Assembly (NCBI RefSeq): GCF_000143415.4
Contig: NW_003314749.1
Location: 1 to 5,097 of the forward strand
Length of the DNA stretch: 5,097 bases
DNA from: Selaginella moellendorffii
Lineage: Eukaryota; Plantae; Lycopodiophyta
Direction: 5' to 3'
The notes under the pieces are model-generated. The model did no database searches. It was given only the letters and a program-made list of their open reading frames with translations, and was not told the origin of the DNA. Positions 1 to 5,097 of the stretch are shown piece after piece (positions within the stretch are counted from its first letter, which is position 1; every line of letters begins with the position of its first letter). A program made the translations under genes and the position numbers.

Positions 1-221
1 CGCCCCGCCCGGCGAACTACCTGCACCCTTTGGGTCCTTTGAGCTCGCCTTTGCTCGCTCGTGCTCGTCTCGAGCACTTCGTTGGGAGTCCACTCCCGCT
101 CTGACTTTCAAGTCGGAGCTTTTGGTCCAAACGTGTTACGCTCGTTTGGCTCTCGCTTCGGCCACTACCATGTGGCGCCCTTCCAGCTCCACTTTGGGGC
201 CTAGGGATTTTGTGTCTCACA
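1..221 (-). repeat. 3' LTR, 5' part (U3), truncated at the window start
   Basis: Begins TGT directly after the PPT on the minus strand. GC-rich with dense hairpins. It shares no sequence with 4362-5097, so LTR identity cannot be confirmed in this window. Confidence 0.65.
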
Positions 222-233
222 ACTCCACCACCC
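222..233 (-). promoter_or_regulatory. Polypurine tract
   Basis: Minus strand GGGTGGTGGAGT directly followed by TGTGAGAC (LTR start). It is preceded by GATGAGGACATCG, which resembles the GAGGAC motif upstream of chromovirus PPTs. Confidence 0.7.
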
Positions 234-325
234 ATAGACGAAGTTCGATGTCCTCATCGAACGGTAAACCATTTTGTAAAGTAACACTCGCGTGTGTTAC
301 CATTTCCATCCTTGGCACCTAGCCA

Positions 326-456
326 ATATTTGTCAATGGTTTGACATTGAAGGCTCACCATGCCTTCTCCATATTCGTCAATGGTTTAACATTGAAGGCT
401 CACCATGCCTTTTGCATAGGCCTCCATGGTTTGACACCAAAGGCTCACCATGCCTT
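326..456. repeat. Tandem repeat, 45-bp unit, about 3 copies
   Basis: Units start at 326, 371 and 416. The shared core is ATGGTTTRACAYYRAAGGCTCACCATGCCTT; the third copy is the most diverged. Confidence 0.95.
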
Positions 457-1319
457 GCCTATCCTCTAAGGAGGGTAGTCTCTCCAACTTAGAGATTGAT
501 TGGACCACATGTAGAGGTTCTCTTCTTTTATTGGTTTAGTCCTCGCTAAATCTCTTAGAGACCCTTCTCTAAGTCAATCCCACTACTCCTTCTCGAGTAG
601 TCTCGATTTCCATCGATATAACCTTTGCACTTTGGAACTTTGAATTTTGACTTCTTGGAGTCAATTTCCTAGGTGTCTCCGACACCTTGCCTTGCACCTT
701 TTTGTGCAACTCCACTTCCCATCCTAGGAAGTTCTCTACTCGAGGGCACCATCATCCTCTCTTCTATTTCGTGCCAAAGTTCCAGTTATCATACTTTGTG
801 TTAGGGCTGTTCATGGCCCTATCATTTGGCTACCTTACCGCTCCCTCCCTTGGAGCTTCCACTTTCGCCAAATCGGAGCATTTCGGAATCCCTCCTTGGA
901 AACACACTTCCTTTCCCGCAACTTGTTAGCATCCAACACATTAGTGTTCCTCGCCTAACTTTGTCACTTGGATTCCTTCCAAGGGATTCCACGGCCCTAT
1001 CTTGGCCACTCATCTTTTGCTCCTATCCATTGATTGTTGCACCAAGCAACATCGAATCTCTACCTCCCTCCTTGAGGTATTGTTTCGGTTCCATAGCAAA
1101 GACTCTTCTTTGCCAAGTCCGGAGGATGTTCACCCCTAGTACGTCTCTTTAGCATCTTTTGCTATGGGCTCTATCCACGGCCCAACTTCGTGACCCTCCC
1201 ATGGGTCTTTTATAGAGACTACTTTCCTCGGACTCACTATGCCATCGCACGGACATAGTTTATTTCCCTTAGGTGCTCTTCCCACTTGGTCATCACGACC
1301 AAGCCACACCACCTTAAAC

Positions 1320-1910
1320 AGTTCAATTTCAACATTTTGAACCAGGAACTTCATTCCTTAGCCAACCAAGGACCTTGTCCTTATCTGGCCATAAGATCAC
1401 CTAGTGATCTCACCTTGGCACCTTAACAGAGTTGCCAAGAGGTACTTGGTCTTCTAGACCTCCAAGTTGTTGACTATAACCCCGGGGGCATCCCCCACAC
1501 TTGGCGGTGCACCCAAGCCAGCCCTTACGGCAAAGGGTTCATAGCAACTGAGATTAGGTGTCCCCATCTCACTCACCACGACCTTGGTGCCACTTGCACC
1601 AAAGCGTTCAAGTTAGATATGCCGAGCTTTCACACTAAGCAATCTAACCGTGCATCACGACTCCGAGGCATCCCTCGCTTGGCGGTGTGCCCAAACCAGT
1701 CTCCCCACTGAGAGTCCATGACCACCGAAATATGAGTGTCCTCATATTCCAAACCATCACCACGCCCTAGTGATTTGGGACTTGAACCCAAGCACTAGAG
1801 GGTCGGGACTCGAACCCAACCTCCGTATATGCATCTACGGACGGCATCACACAAGATGCCTGGCGTGACTCCCCACGCCGGTGCACCAACTTATTTTTAA
1901 AGCGCGCTAC
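1320..1910 (-). other. Highly structured cis-acting RNA domain in the 3' internal region
   Basis: Near-contiguous stems, e.g. 1368-1382, 1394-1410, 1414-1439, 1584-1602, 1664-1677, 1727-1750, 1767-1798, 1801-1821, 1822-1841, 1843-1860 and 1862-1879. Some extend by G-U pairs only on the minus strand. Confidence 0.65.
1469..1800 (-). repeat. Diverged tandem duplication (~180-bp period) of a structured non-coding module
   Basis: Shared anchors: GGCATCCC (1487/1667), CTTGGCGGTG..CCCAA.CCAG (1500/1678), GTGTCC (1558/1736) and TCACCACG.CCT (1573/1757). Confidence 0.85.
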
Positions 1911-2335
1911 AGATCACAGCTTAGGAACCTAGTTCCTCCACACTGCCAAGTCCTCTCACTTGACATGTCTGTGATCATGCATGGACTCCTCCATGCTCGG
2001 CCCCATGGCCCACCCTTTTTGAAATTATCACCTTCAACTAGGGTATTTGTTCCCCCGACGTGCCAATCTCGCTTGGCAAGTTCTCATACCACTGTAACAT
2101 GGTTCCTGCATAAGCGTGAAAGTCCTTGACCATCGACTTTCGTTCAAAGCCCTCTCTTTGAACACTCGGGAACTACTTCCCTACCCTTGATAGCCTTGCC
2201 TCATGGCAAGCTTCAAGACCACGCTTCTGCTGCGCCACTCTGATTTCGCGCGTTCCATGAACCATTTACACTTGGCCTTTCTAGGTACTAAGCTACCTAG
2301 AATCGTCTTTGGGAACCTTGAAGGAACTCTGTCCC

Positions 2336-2390
2336 TCAGCTTGCTAAGGCCTCCCTTTTGCAAGCCTTCCAAATGCCACATAGTCTAACA
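2336..2390 (-). pseudogene. Possible chromodomain relic at the end of pol
   Basis: WKACKREALAS* at 2371-2336 resembles WKG.P..EASWE, with W changed to TGA. The position fits but the match is short. Confidence 0.3.
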
Positions 2391-2919
2391 TGGACAATTC
2401 CATAACTTAGACTCTCCATGGCGTCACGGTTGCTAGCGGCAACACCCTCGAGCCCCCACTTGATTCCCCACTCCCAGTTGGCATAACCAACCTTGGTTAT
2501 GCCCTTCGATTTCTATGGTTCAGTTCCATCCCAATACTACTTGCCTTTGGCTTCACACCTTTCCTTCGGTCATTCTCCTCCAGATCAGGAGGATAGCTTT
2601 GCACTTTCTATCATGCCTTAGCAAGTATTCTTAGGGATGAACCTACCCAATAGCCCAGGGAGTGGTTCCTCAATCTGGGTATGCTCACCTTATAATCCCA
2701 CACACTGGGATTACATTGTTGCTTATGGGCCTTTACATGCCCATCACTAGCCTTGCCAAAATTCCATTTTTGGCTTTGTCCAGCTTGGGTAGACAGTCCT
2801 CTCCTGTCTCCGCAACCTTGGACATTTGGATAGCACATTCTATCCATCATTCGCTAGGGACTTAGTCCCTTGGGCTTTATCCATTGCCCTCGCGACATCA
2901 AACACCACCTTTTGGTGTT

Positions 2920-3090
2920 CTAGAGTGTTCAGGTGTCCCAATGATGGCTTTCTTGACAATGAGTATTTCCTTTTATGACATTGACTTACTATATCGCAAC
3001 ACAAACAACTTATCCCCCGCAAGGGTATATCCGACTTCCCTATGCTAGAAGTCTTGGGTAGCTACCTTCTACCCGTTTAACCAGTTATTT
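2920..3090 (-). pseudogene. Degenerate integrase N-terminal (zinc-binding region) relic
   Basis: GDKLFVLRY at 3017-2991 resembles G.RL[YF]VP in gypsy integrases. CH and GH residues follow in another frame of the ORF track. It lies downstream of RT. Confidence 0.4.
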
Positions 3091-3199
3091 TGCACCTCTT
3101 GCTTAGTTGCCTCATAGTTGTCAAGTCCTACAACTCATTGCTTGGTGCTTTCACACCTCCATCATTATCTAGGTCACCACACTCCAACTGCATGCTCTG

Positions 3200-3690
3200 C
3201 AACTTAGGCTATGCCATTCCCATTTCCATTGGGATTCTTTTGGCAAGGGGTTCTCATGAACCCACCAACATAGCCTCAAGGTATCACACCTTGGCATATT
3301 TGGTGTCTCCACACCATCGGCTCCACGAGCCTACCTCTATGACACTTCTTCTTTGTGTCTAAGTCTTTGCCAAGACCAATGCCACTCTTTCTCATGCCAA
3401 CCATCCGTTAGCACTACACCATAGAGGTCACACACAACTTTGTGTCAAAGTTGTTTTCTTTTTGGGAACACCTTTCCCACGACTTTAGCATGGCACATTT
3501 TGCCATCGATGAGATACCCTCTGTTCTCATCCTTGGATCCTATGATCCCCCCCGCATCCTTTGTGGGGTACAATGCACCTCAGTCCAAATGCTTCCATCA
3601 GTCCTTTTAGGACCATCCCTTGACTCTACTTGAGTCATCCAGCAGTTTTGGACTTGATTAATCCACAGACCCGTAAGGTCCTACTTGTGA
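3200..3690 (-). pseudogene. pol: Degenerate, internally deleted reverse transcriptase relic plus RT-RNase H linker
   Basis: Collinear fragments in mixed frames: TLRVC/VD 3679-3661 (LRMCVDY), RDGPKRT 3620-3600 (GDEPKT), MEAFGLRC 3598-3575 (MPFGL), GYLIDG 3519-3502 (YLDD), KVF near 3470, and QWKWEW 3231-3214 (linker W.W). Confidence 0.6.
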
Positions 3691-3861
3691 GGCACTAGCT
3701 CACTGGAATACACTTCTTGCATTCCTGTCCTACTCAAAAGGACTATTTTCACAAGTGTTACTCCGACACTTGATTTTGTTCTCTGGGGGCAACCTTTGCC
3801 CCTTAGGACTACTTGTCCATGTGATGAGAATACCAACTCATCCACTTAATACACCCCCAAC

Positions 3862-3888
3862 TCCTTGGGTTGCTCCAGCATTTATTAG
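3862..3888 (-). pseudogene. Degenerate aspartic protease active-site relic
   Basis: LINAGATQG resembles LIDTGATHN with the catalytic Asp lost. It lies between the gag-like and RT-like motifs. Confidence 0.55.
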
Positions 3889-3979
3889 AGGTAGCCCCGA
3901 CTACCATTTCGAGGACTCGTGTCCTCATCCATACTTGACCTCTCACTGTCATCCATTCCGGTCTCACCTTCATGAGCAC

Positions 3980-4200
3980 CAGCCTCAACCATGTGAGGAT
4001 AAACTTGTGACTCCTTTATTGTTTTGGAGTCTCTATCTTTCCCGTGATCCCAACTTTAGTTGTTTACCACAACAACCTTAGCCAATTTGCTGAGACAAAT
4101 GCTCATCCGGATCACATCCTCAACTCAATGAGGAAAACCTTGCACTGTTCCCAAGATCCCAAAGTCGTTCCATTATTGGCCCTTTTCTATCCACCACCTC
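3980..4200 (-). pseudogene. gag: Degenerate gag relic
   Basis: RWWIEKGQ*WNDF at 4199-4161 resembles the retrotransposon Gag WW...W.DF motif and sits in the expected position after the PBS. Boundaries are approximate. Confidence 0.4.
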
Positions 4201-4346
4201 GTCTACAAGTTCACACATGAACTGTAATGGGGAGCCATGTCTTCCCGACTTGCTACTCCTCAAGGATAGGCCCACTCCTCGGACCTTCCGATGCCAACAC
4301 TAGTGGTGATATACTTGAGCACCAATAAAAGTCGGACTAAGGAACA

Positions 4347-4358
4347 GCTCCGATACCA
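4347..4358 (-). promoter_or_regulatory. Primer binding site complementary to the 3' end of initiator tRNA-Met
   Basis: Minus strand TGGTATCGGAGC versus canonical plant TGGTATCAGAGC (11/12). It follows ACA-ATT. Confidence 0.88.
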
Positions 4359-4361
4359 AAT

Positions 4362-5097
4362 TGTAGGCGACTAATTTTTCCATCTCACTTTAGTCACTTA
4401 ACCACACCTCCGACCACTTGGAGGAGTCTCATTCACAACCTCCATAAGTCCAACTCAGGACCTGGGGCTTGCCAGCCCCGAGAATGGCATCCATGCCACT
4501 CAACATTTGCACTTGGTCCAAGTGCTCCACGTGTCCGATCCCATGACCGACACTCAAAGGTACCACCGACATAGCAGCCCGTTACGCTAAGGCCATGCCC
4601 AATCACCTTTGCCACACTGGTAGTCCAATACCACTTGCATCACCGTCTTGGCTCTCCAAGACTAGGCAAACCCTCTGTGAGTGGTCATCTCAAATCCACT
4701 CCTTAGCATCCTTAGGATGCCCACCGACAAGGGGAATAGCCTTCCCCAATATCCCTCTGTCAGTTCCCACTAAGTCCCTTTCTGCCCCTGGCTGTGTTTG
4801 CCAACACTGCCACTGGATCGAGACCCACAGGCCCGACCACTAAGTCCCACAGTCCTCTGGGACTTCCTCCCCACACGACTGTGTCCTTGGTCACTACCCC
4901 AGAGGACTGCTCCTCTTCCTTTCCACAGTCTGGGCCTTTGGGACAACATTTCGGAACACCGTGGCCTTACGCGAGCCACCTGGGTACTCTCCTCGCCTTC
5001 TGTCCTTGGGTGCTCTAGCCATGGGCTTAGAGCGGGTTCCATTGAGCCACGACAGGTATCCAAGTAGGTAGTGCCACCCACACTTGGACTGGGAGCA
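4362..5097 (-). repeat. 5' LTR, 3' part (U5 and possibly R), truncated at the window end
   Basis: The minus strand ends in ...TCGCCTACA (canonical CA terminus), 3 nt before the PBS. The far boundary is not visible. Confidence 0.75.

Follow-up and report, generated by a model that had tools for sequence, protein, structure and literature searches.

The host element and its LTR-like junctions

The window, meaning the whole 5,097-nt stretch of DNA that was analysed, is occupied throughout by a repeat without coding capacity. The features that frame the structured region are the following.

1-5097, minus strand: non-coding, pervasively hairpin-rich repeat, in which perfect hairpins with stems of 5-10 bp and loops of 3-10 nt number about 115
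4362-5097, minus strand: probable 5' LTR end, with CA at 4362-4363; the first letters of the minus strand, at 5097, are TG, possibly but not necessarily the start of the LTR
4347-4358, minus strand: PBS-like 12-mer with one mismatch to the conserved plant PBS (PMC7215508), preceded by TACA (4362-4365) and a 3-nt spacer
2080-2096, minus strand: second LTR-end/PBS-like junction, consisting of TACA, 1 nt and a 12-mer that departs from the conserved PBS at two positions
1450-2080, minus strand: most stable structured domain of the minus strand, a chain of about 14 hairpins from the second PBS-like site to the end of module copy A

ORFs in the window reach at most 108 aa and stop-free stretches at most 134 aa, and in each of the six frames stop codons occur at a density of 3.3-5.2 per 100 codons. 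No Pfam family was found above the cut-off in 30 translated pieces of the window, 20 window ORFs have no counterpart in the protein collection searched, and, as the window has no gene remnants, there are none in which breaks could be counted. C and T predominate along the whole plus strand, and both CpG (observed/expected 0.49) and CAG/CTG (observed/expected about 0.55) are depleted. Depletion of CG and CHG is the decay pattern of plant methylation.

A PBS-like site is present just inside a putative LTR end in CA at 4347-4358, with a weaker one at 2080-2096, the reference for both being the conserved plant PBS 12-mer printed in PMC7215508. TACA followed by 0-4 nt and TGGTAT is found twice on the minus strand (the second match at 2086-2096) where 0.04 matches are expected, and none of 200 shuffles contained two. 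As the PBS-like sites are preceded by TACA, the minus strand is read as the sense strand of an LTR-retrotransposon-like element. Only one putative LTR end is present, with no second LTR or long direct repeat within the 5,097-nt window, and inspection by eye revealed no clear polypurine tract in the window. Matches in the full-text literature to 12-13-mers from the LTR ends and PBS flank were to unrelated primers only.

The two LTR-end/PBS-like junctions are on the same strand, 2267 nt apart, and the sequences upstream of them are without similarity. The double junction possibly results from a segment that was nested or acquired, or from the junction itself having been duplicated internally, as has been reported for a rice element (PMC4717578). 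With two PBS-like junctions and neither a polypurine tract nor a second LTR in the window, the architecture of the element is uncertain.

The element appears to be a gene-less, LARD-like LTR retroelement with minus-strand sense, a family assignment made by architecture only. Its resemblance to LARDs (e.g. Sukkula) is in being non-coding and in having an LTR end with a tRNA-Met-type PBS and a multi-kb internal domain. It differs from LARDs in that the window shows one LTR end and two PBS-like junctions, and the module composed of a hairpin and a four-way junction and the roughly 9-fold excess of hairpins, both described below, are features of the window element. LARDs and other non-coding plant LTR retrotransposons are reported to have well-conserved RNA structure and to depend on autonomous partners (PMC7215508, PMC13570524). 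The preliminary description of this DNA had presented the host as a non-coding element that may use a helper's Gag. Its non-coding nature is confirmed by the shortness of the longest ORF and the lack of Pfam matches, and the PBS-like sites make it LTR-retrotransposon-like; an element of this kind would naturally be expected to depend on the proteins of a helper.

A tandem duplication of a structured RNA module

Comparison of the window with itself (blastn) aligned 1487-1605 with 1667-1793 at 64.6% identity over 130 nt (E 4e-6). The repeat spacing is 178 nt, and a 28-nt core is 82% identical between the copies. The repeated units and the modules within them are these.

1650-1830 and 1469-1649, minus strand: tandem units of about 180 nt each, from self-blastn, MAFFT alignment and the unit folds
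1469-1830, minus strand: layout of the tandem units, with one or two upstream hairpins, then single-stranded CGUGGUGA, then the GACA hairpin, then the four-way junction
1469-1571, minus strand: module copy A, with a GACA-loop hairpin (1549-1571) and a four-way junction (1469-1548)
1469-1548, minus strand: copy A junction, with a bulged 14-bp closing stem and three hairpins with the loops GUAAG, GUGCACCG and (G)AUG
1650-1750, minus strand: module copy B, with a GACA-loop hairpin (1727-1750) and a four-way junction (1650-1725)
1650-1725, minus strand: copy B junction, with the inner loops GGGGAG, GCACACCG and GAUG

One structured RNA module has here been duplicated in tandem, and the two copies have since diverged. 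The stems and loops listed for them in the preliminary description are all present where it placed them, and the homology that it proposed between 1469-1571 and 1650-1750 holds, these copies being diverged at 64.6% identity and folding alike on the minus strand. A model search found no third copy of the module in the 5,097-nt window. Adjacent hairpins at 1802-1822 and 1767-1798 (minus strand) have the 7-nt loops UUCGAGU and UUCAAGU, which we take to resemble a tRNA T-loop.

Folded singly on the minus strand, copies A and B share one architecture (z -2.66 and -4.04, respectively), in which a 9-10-bp hairpin closed by G-C around GACA is followed by the four-way junction. In both copies the closing stem has 14 pairs, is interrupted by two bulges (one 5', one 3') at a distance of six pairs, and encloses three hairpins. 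Plus-strand folds of the same stretches are weaker (z -2.28 for A and -1.44 for B). The RNAalifold consensus on a MAFFT alignment made from sequence only has a z of -4.83 and a structure conservation index (SCI) of 0.66, and none of 300 column shuffles was as good.

In a leave-one-out test, a covariance model was built from copy A and its own fold, with a sequence-only model from the same input as the control. Copy B scored 45.2 bits over its full length with the A-only covariance model and 26.7 bits with the sequence-only model, so that structure adds 18.5 bits. Copy A itself scored 126.5 bits, and the next best site in the window under the A-only model reached 10.8 bits.

The alignment behind the pair counts was fitted to the structure of copy A. 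In this model-fitted alignment of the two copies there are 37 shared pairs, with 98.6% of cells paired and 1 cell unpaired; 7 of the 37 pairs are changed on both sides and 8 on one side. Slid controls, with the 3' partners moved by 1-3 columns, gave 36-49% paired cells and 0-1 double changes. These covariation counts rest on two paralogous copies from one locus, and the shuffle control on the two-copy alignment (6/500) is weak because there are only two sequences. Within the closing stem, the most parsimonious ungapped register has 4 double changes where a purely structural register suggests 7, and one pair is rescued by a bulge shift, in our own reading of the folds and the model alignment. 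The first inner hairpin has a position common to both copies but not a common sequence. The number of compensatory changes described for the stems had been put somewhat generously, the closing stem contributing 4 and not 7.

The loops GACA and GAUG are identical in copies A and B, and the 8-nt middle loop is identical at 6 of its 8 positions, while the first inner loop differs. Conservation is 76% in unpaired columns and 64% in paired columns, a difference that is not significant (p 0.35). Among the cells of the shared structure there are 10 G.U and 0 A.C (p 0.002), which points to an RNA read from the minus strand; the asymmetry fits only a minus-strand RNA. Retention of the fold through changes in stem sequence, with G.U tolerated and A.C not, indicates selection on RNA rather than on DNA. 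The proposal of stems that changed in sequence yet kept their pairing, around conserved loops and on the minus strand, is thus supported by the 98.6% of cells paired, by the consensus z of -4.83 and by the 45.2 bits of the structural model against 26.7.

From the second PBS-like junction (2080-2096) to the modules the distance is 250-620 nt, and from the better PBS-like site (4347-4358) it is 2.5-2.9 kb, the modules being downstream of both. Since the 1450-2080 domain starts right after the second PBS-like junction, both modules are in a leader-like position. The module had been described as 3'-located; with only 250-620 nt between it and the junction at 2080-2096, the position is that of a 5' leader, and is leader-like and not demonstrably 3'.

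Apart from a chance CRISPR-repeat match at 466-502, neither strand of the window has a match at E up to 10 among the 4227 families of Rfam 15, retroviral cis-elements included (cmscan). Hammerhead and 5S sequences, the marks of retrozymes and Cassandra-type TRIMs, likewise have no Rfam match in the window, and ARAGORN found 0 tRNA genes there. A tRNA or tRNA-derived SINE was considered and rejected, given the ARAGORN result of 0 and given that a 14-bp closing stem with loops of 3-4 nt and 8 nt does not fit a cloverleaf. The module pattern has no match in viral contigs, where a looser version of it occurs at 118 places; in metagenome contigs it has 12 matches. None of these places is similar to the window beyond the pattern. 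One of them, in a contig labelled as human-gut metagenome and not taken to be human DNA, was screened in bulk only and left out of the analysis.

Hairpin richness of the element and contacts between loops

Perfect hairpins with stems of at least 6 bp and loops of 3-10 nt number 69 in the window, against 7.4 ± 2.4 in shuffles, which is roughly a 9-fold excess. With stems of at least 5 bp there are 115, where 26.7 are expected. The hairpins are evenly spread, also through the putative LTR part, at about 13 per 500 nt (a mean spacing of about 43 nt). Counts for the different repeat symmetries (hairpin 69, mirror 8, direct 14, complement 16) show that the excess is specific to hairpin symmetry. 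Stems are mostly of 5-7 bp and perfect Watson-Crick. Loops and stem flanks are purine-rich, the composition of the loops on the minus strand being G 244, A 217, U 129 and C 59. Imperfect stems are too few across the window for G.U against A.C to tell the functional strand.

In 150-nt windows, almost the whole of the 5.1 kb is more stable than its dinucleotide shuffles on both strands, with a mean z of -2.46 on the minus strand and -2.94 on the plus strand. Since hairpins are present throughout the element, local pairing is by itself not special. The duplicated motif of about 100 nt is not an isolated structured island, the whole window being a chain of hairpins. The 1450-2080 domain is the sole part in which the minus-strand z is better than the plus-strand z; of the 12 most stable 150-nt windows of the minus strand, 8 have their start at 1451-1901, and a 421-nt minus-strand fold in this domain has a z of -5.65. 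The papers searched contain no description, for LTR retrotransposons, of an element-wide excess of hairpins or of a module of a hairpin and a four-way junction.

Within the 700-nt context, the copy B junction is predicted with pair probabilities of 0.5-0.99. The copy A junction is predicted weakly (pair probabilities 0-0.24) and is not the predicted fold there, because a long-range pairing between 1506-1513 and 1880-1887 competes with it. These are the only two occurrences of the 8-nt palindrome GGTGCACC, both within the structured domain and the first in the middle hairpin of copy A, and in the 700-nt fold they pair with each other and displace the copy A junction. Each copy of GGTGCACC could also pair between two RNA molecules.

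A further candidate contact is that of the CACCG of the middle loop with a single-stranded UGGUG upstream of the GACA hairpin; copies A and B both allow 5 bp here, which could form inside one unit or from one unit to the other. The UGGUG is contained in the conserved single-stranded CGUGGUGA, found upstream of each GACA hairpin at 1572-1581 and 1756-1764 (minus strand). On complementarity, the CACCG/UGGUG pairing is possibly a pseudoknot or a contact between units. Separately, the hairpin at 1822-1841 (minus strand) has a 6-bp stem and an 8-nt loop, GAUGCAUA, with a 6-nt self-complementary stretch flanked by purines. A self-complementary stretch flanked by purines in a hairpin loop is the classical layout of a loop-loop dimer. 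In a rough count, about 3 palindromic hexamers are seen in loops against about 2 expected by chance, so that the hairpin at 1822-1841 is a lead only.

The preliminary description had instead placed weight on a heterotypic kiss between GACA and GAUG, a variant of the minimal kissing complex of gammaretroviruses. Such a contact would dimerise the RNA or compact it for packaging. The two loops are identical in both copies and stand on stable stems, and the CA of one is complementary to the UG of the other. This complementarity is of 2 bp, however, which is the length reached by nearly every pair of loops in the module, and a match that almost all loop pairs reach carries no information. One of the two pairs would be A-U, and as both loops are invariant nothing covaries. 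Longer candidates exist in the 5-bp CACCG/UGGUG contact, the palindrome GGTGCACC that occurs twice and the 6-nt palindrome in the loop of 1822-1841, and no retroviral element in Rfam matches. The heterotypic kiss is therefore not upheld, and as an account of the module it is very improbable.

Candidate role of the module and its alternatives

The reading preferred here is that the module is a selection-maintained, tandem-duplicated cis-acting RNA domain of a LARD-like non-autonomous LTR retroelement, forming the core of a leader-like domain and serving most likely in recognition by the Gag or nucleocapsid of a helper. It is put forward tentatively, at somewhat less than an even chance. The GACA hairpin and the four-way junction would be read on the minus strand as the sense of the non-coding element, and the module would be the core of a leader-like cis-acting domain at about 1450-2080, downstream of a PBS-like site. 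This domain would present conserved purine-containing loops (GACA, GAUG and the loop containing CACCG) on rigid helices, and would most likely be the platform on which the RNA is recognised and packaged by an autonomous helper's Gag/nucleocapsid; RNA-RNA pairing might also be supported there. Divergence of the stems between the tandem copies would keep the modules from mispairing. The two-base GACA/GAUG kiss would have no part in it.

By analogy, a role in helper Gag recognition is probably the one to expect, because gene-less elements must be recognised in trans, LARDs and TRIMs keep RNA structure, and unpaired purines bind Gag. Conserved RNA secondary structure has been reported for LARDs and TRIMs (PMC7215508), and in several retroviruses Gag binds directly to unpaired purine loops carried on hairpins (PMC8096270).

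The module may alternatively have no specific function and be an ordinary tandem duplication, its pairing kept by a generic force that makes the whole element rich in hairpins. Local RNA structure might be under general selection, or template switching during replication or reverse transcription might make and repair perfect stems in single events. The 69 hairpins against 7.4 ± 2.4 expected, evenly spread and with the LTR part included, are in keeping with this, as is an enrichment specific to reverse-complement symmetry. Template switching would yield short stems of mostly perfect Watson-Crick pairs, which is what is seen, and it has been documented to make perfect stems and multi-base compensatory changes (PMC8794818). 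Short internal duplications are also often found in non-autonomous LTR elements (PMC13570524). What such a force leaves unexplained is the higher-order geometry that the copies share, with the 14-bp stem, the bulges six pairs apart, the order and size of the three hairpins and the identical loops, and the absence, in so hairpin-rich a window, of any other site above 10.8 bits under the model. Nor would the strand-specific 10:0 ratio of G.U over A.C be expected from a process acting on DNA. A module without function of its own is accordingly rather unlikely. A role in the nuclear export or stability of an unspliced, non-coding retroelement RNA would also be conceivable by analogy, and duplicated or internally symmetric transport elements and direct repeats are present in some retroviruses and rodent retroelements. 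The module is duplicated, structured and free of protein coding, on an RNA that would need to reach the cytoplasm unspliced, and identical loops in two copies would suit a repeated protein-binding site. The position is leader-like, however, 250-620 nt after a PBS-like site and not near a 3' end; Rfam, including the retroviral direct-repeat and transport elements, gives no match; and to our knowledge no export or stability element of this sort is known in plant retrotransposons. This makes such a role quite improbable. The least probable of these readings makes the module a mere passenger, derived by capture or degeneration from a structured RNA of the host (for instance a small RNA gene or a tRNA-related SINE). 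The four-way junction is cloverleaf-like and two upstream hairpins have 7-nt, T-loop-like loops, but ARAGORN reports no tRNA, the helix and loop sizes are unlike those of tRNA, and Rfam is empty at E up to 10 with tRNA, 5S, 7SL, snRNAs and ribozymes included.

The preferred reading, of a cis-acting domain for helper recognition, can be extended to the element as a whole. The RNA might be a purpose-built chain of short perfect hairpins, about 115 in number, whose loops and connecting stretches are rich in purines. In such a structure, ordered on the scale of the genome, the hairpins would be dispersed low-affinity nucleocapsid sites and the tandem four-way junctions after the PBS a high-affinity core for nucleation and pairing. 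This wider proposal is unlikely to be correct as it stands. If true, it would be a string-of-hairpins form of packaging that serves to out-compete the helper's own RNA, which is not described for LTR retrotransposons. The roughly 9-fold excess of hairpins is a separate oddity, and bears on whether selection or template-switch mutation shapes the RNAs of retroelements.

Several known systems offer comparisons. Like retroviral Psi leaders, the element has a stable multi-hairpin domain downstream of a PBS, with conserved and partly purine loops on helices; unlike them, it is without Rfam similarity and has no gag downstream of the module, the module is tandemly duplicated, and binding is a candidate property suggested by the likeness. 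Rodent VL30-type elements are gene-less LTR elements that are packaged by a helper virus and persist through cis-signals for another element's proteins. The concept of a gene-less LTR element with cis-signals for foreign proteins is shared with these, but they belong to another kingdom and have no sequence relation. Some RNA viruses have RNA structure ordered on the scale of the genome, with folding energy below shuffled expectation along the whole molecule. The window is similar to these in having a mean z of about -2.5 to -2.9 throughout, and differs in being a non-coding retroelement with very short, mostly perfect hairpins.

Non-coding LTR retroelements are a large share of many plant genomes, and the RNA signals with which they borrow from helpers are essentially unmapped. 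The module is a concrete, alignable candidate for such a signal, being compact and duplicated, with compensatory change and strand-specific tolerance of G.U.

Two other features of the window are of a different kind. At 1895-1908 (minus strand) an A/T-rich, TATA-like sequence, UUUAAAAAUAAG, stands out from the G/C-balanced structured region around it, and a stable series of hairpins follows about 30 nt further downstream; UUUAAAAAUAAG could be a promoter or a polyadenylation-type signal, or nothing. At 326-460 a 45-nt unit occurs as three successive copies (100/91/76% identity), with two short hairpins in each unit.
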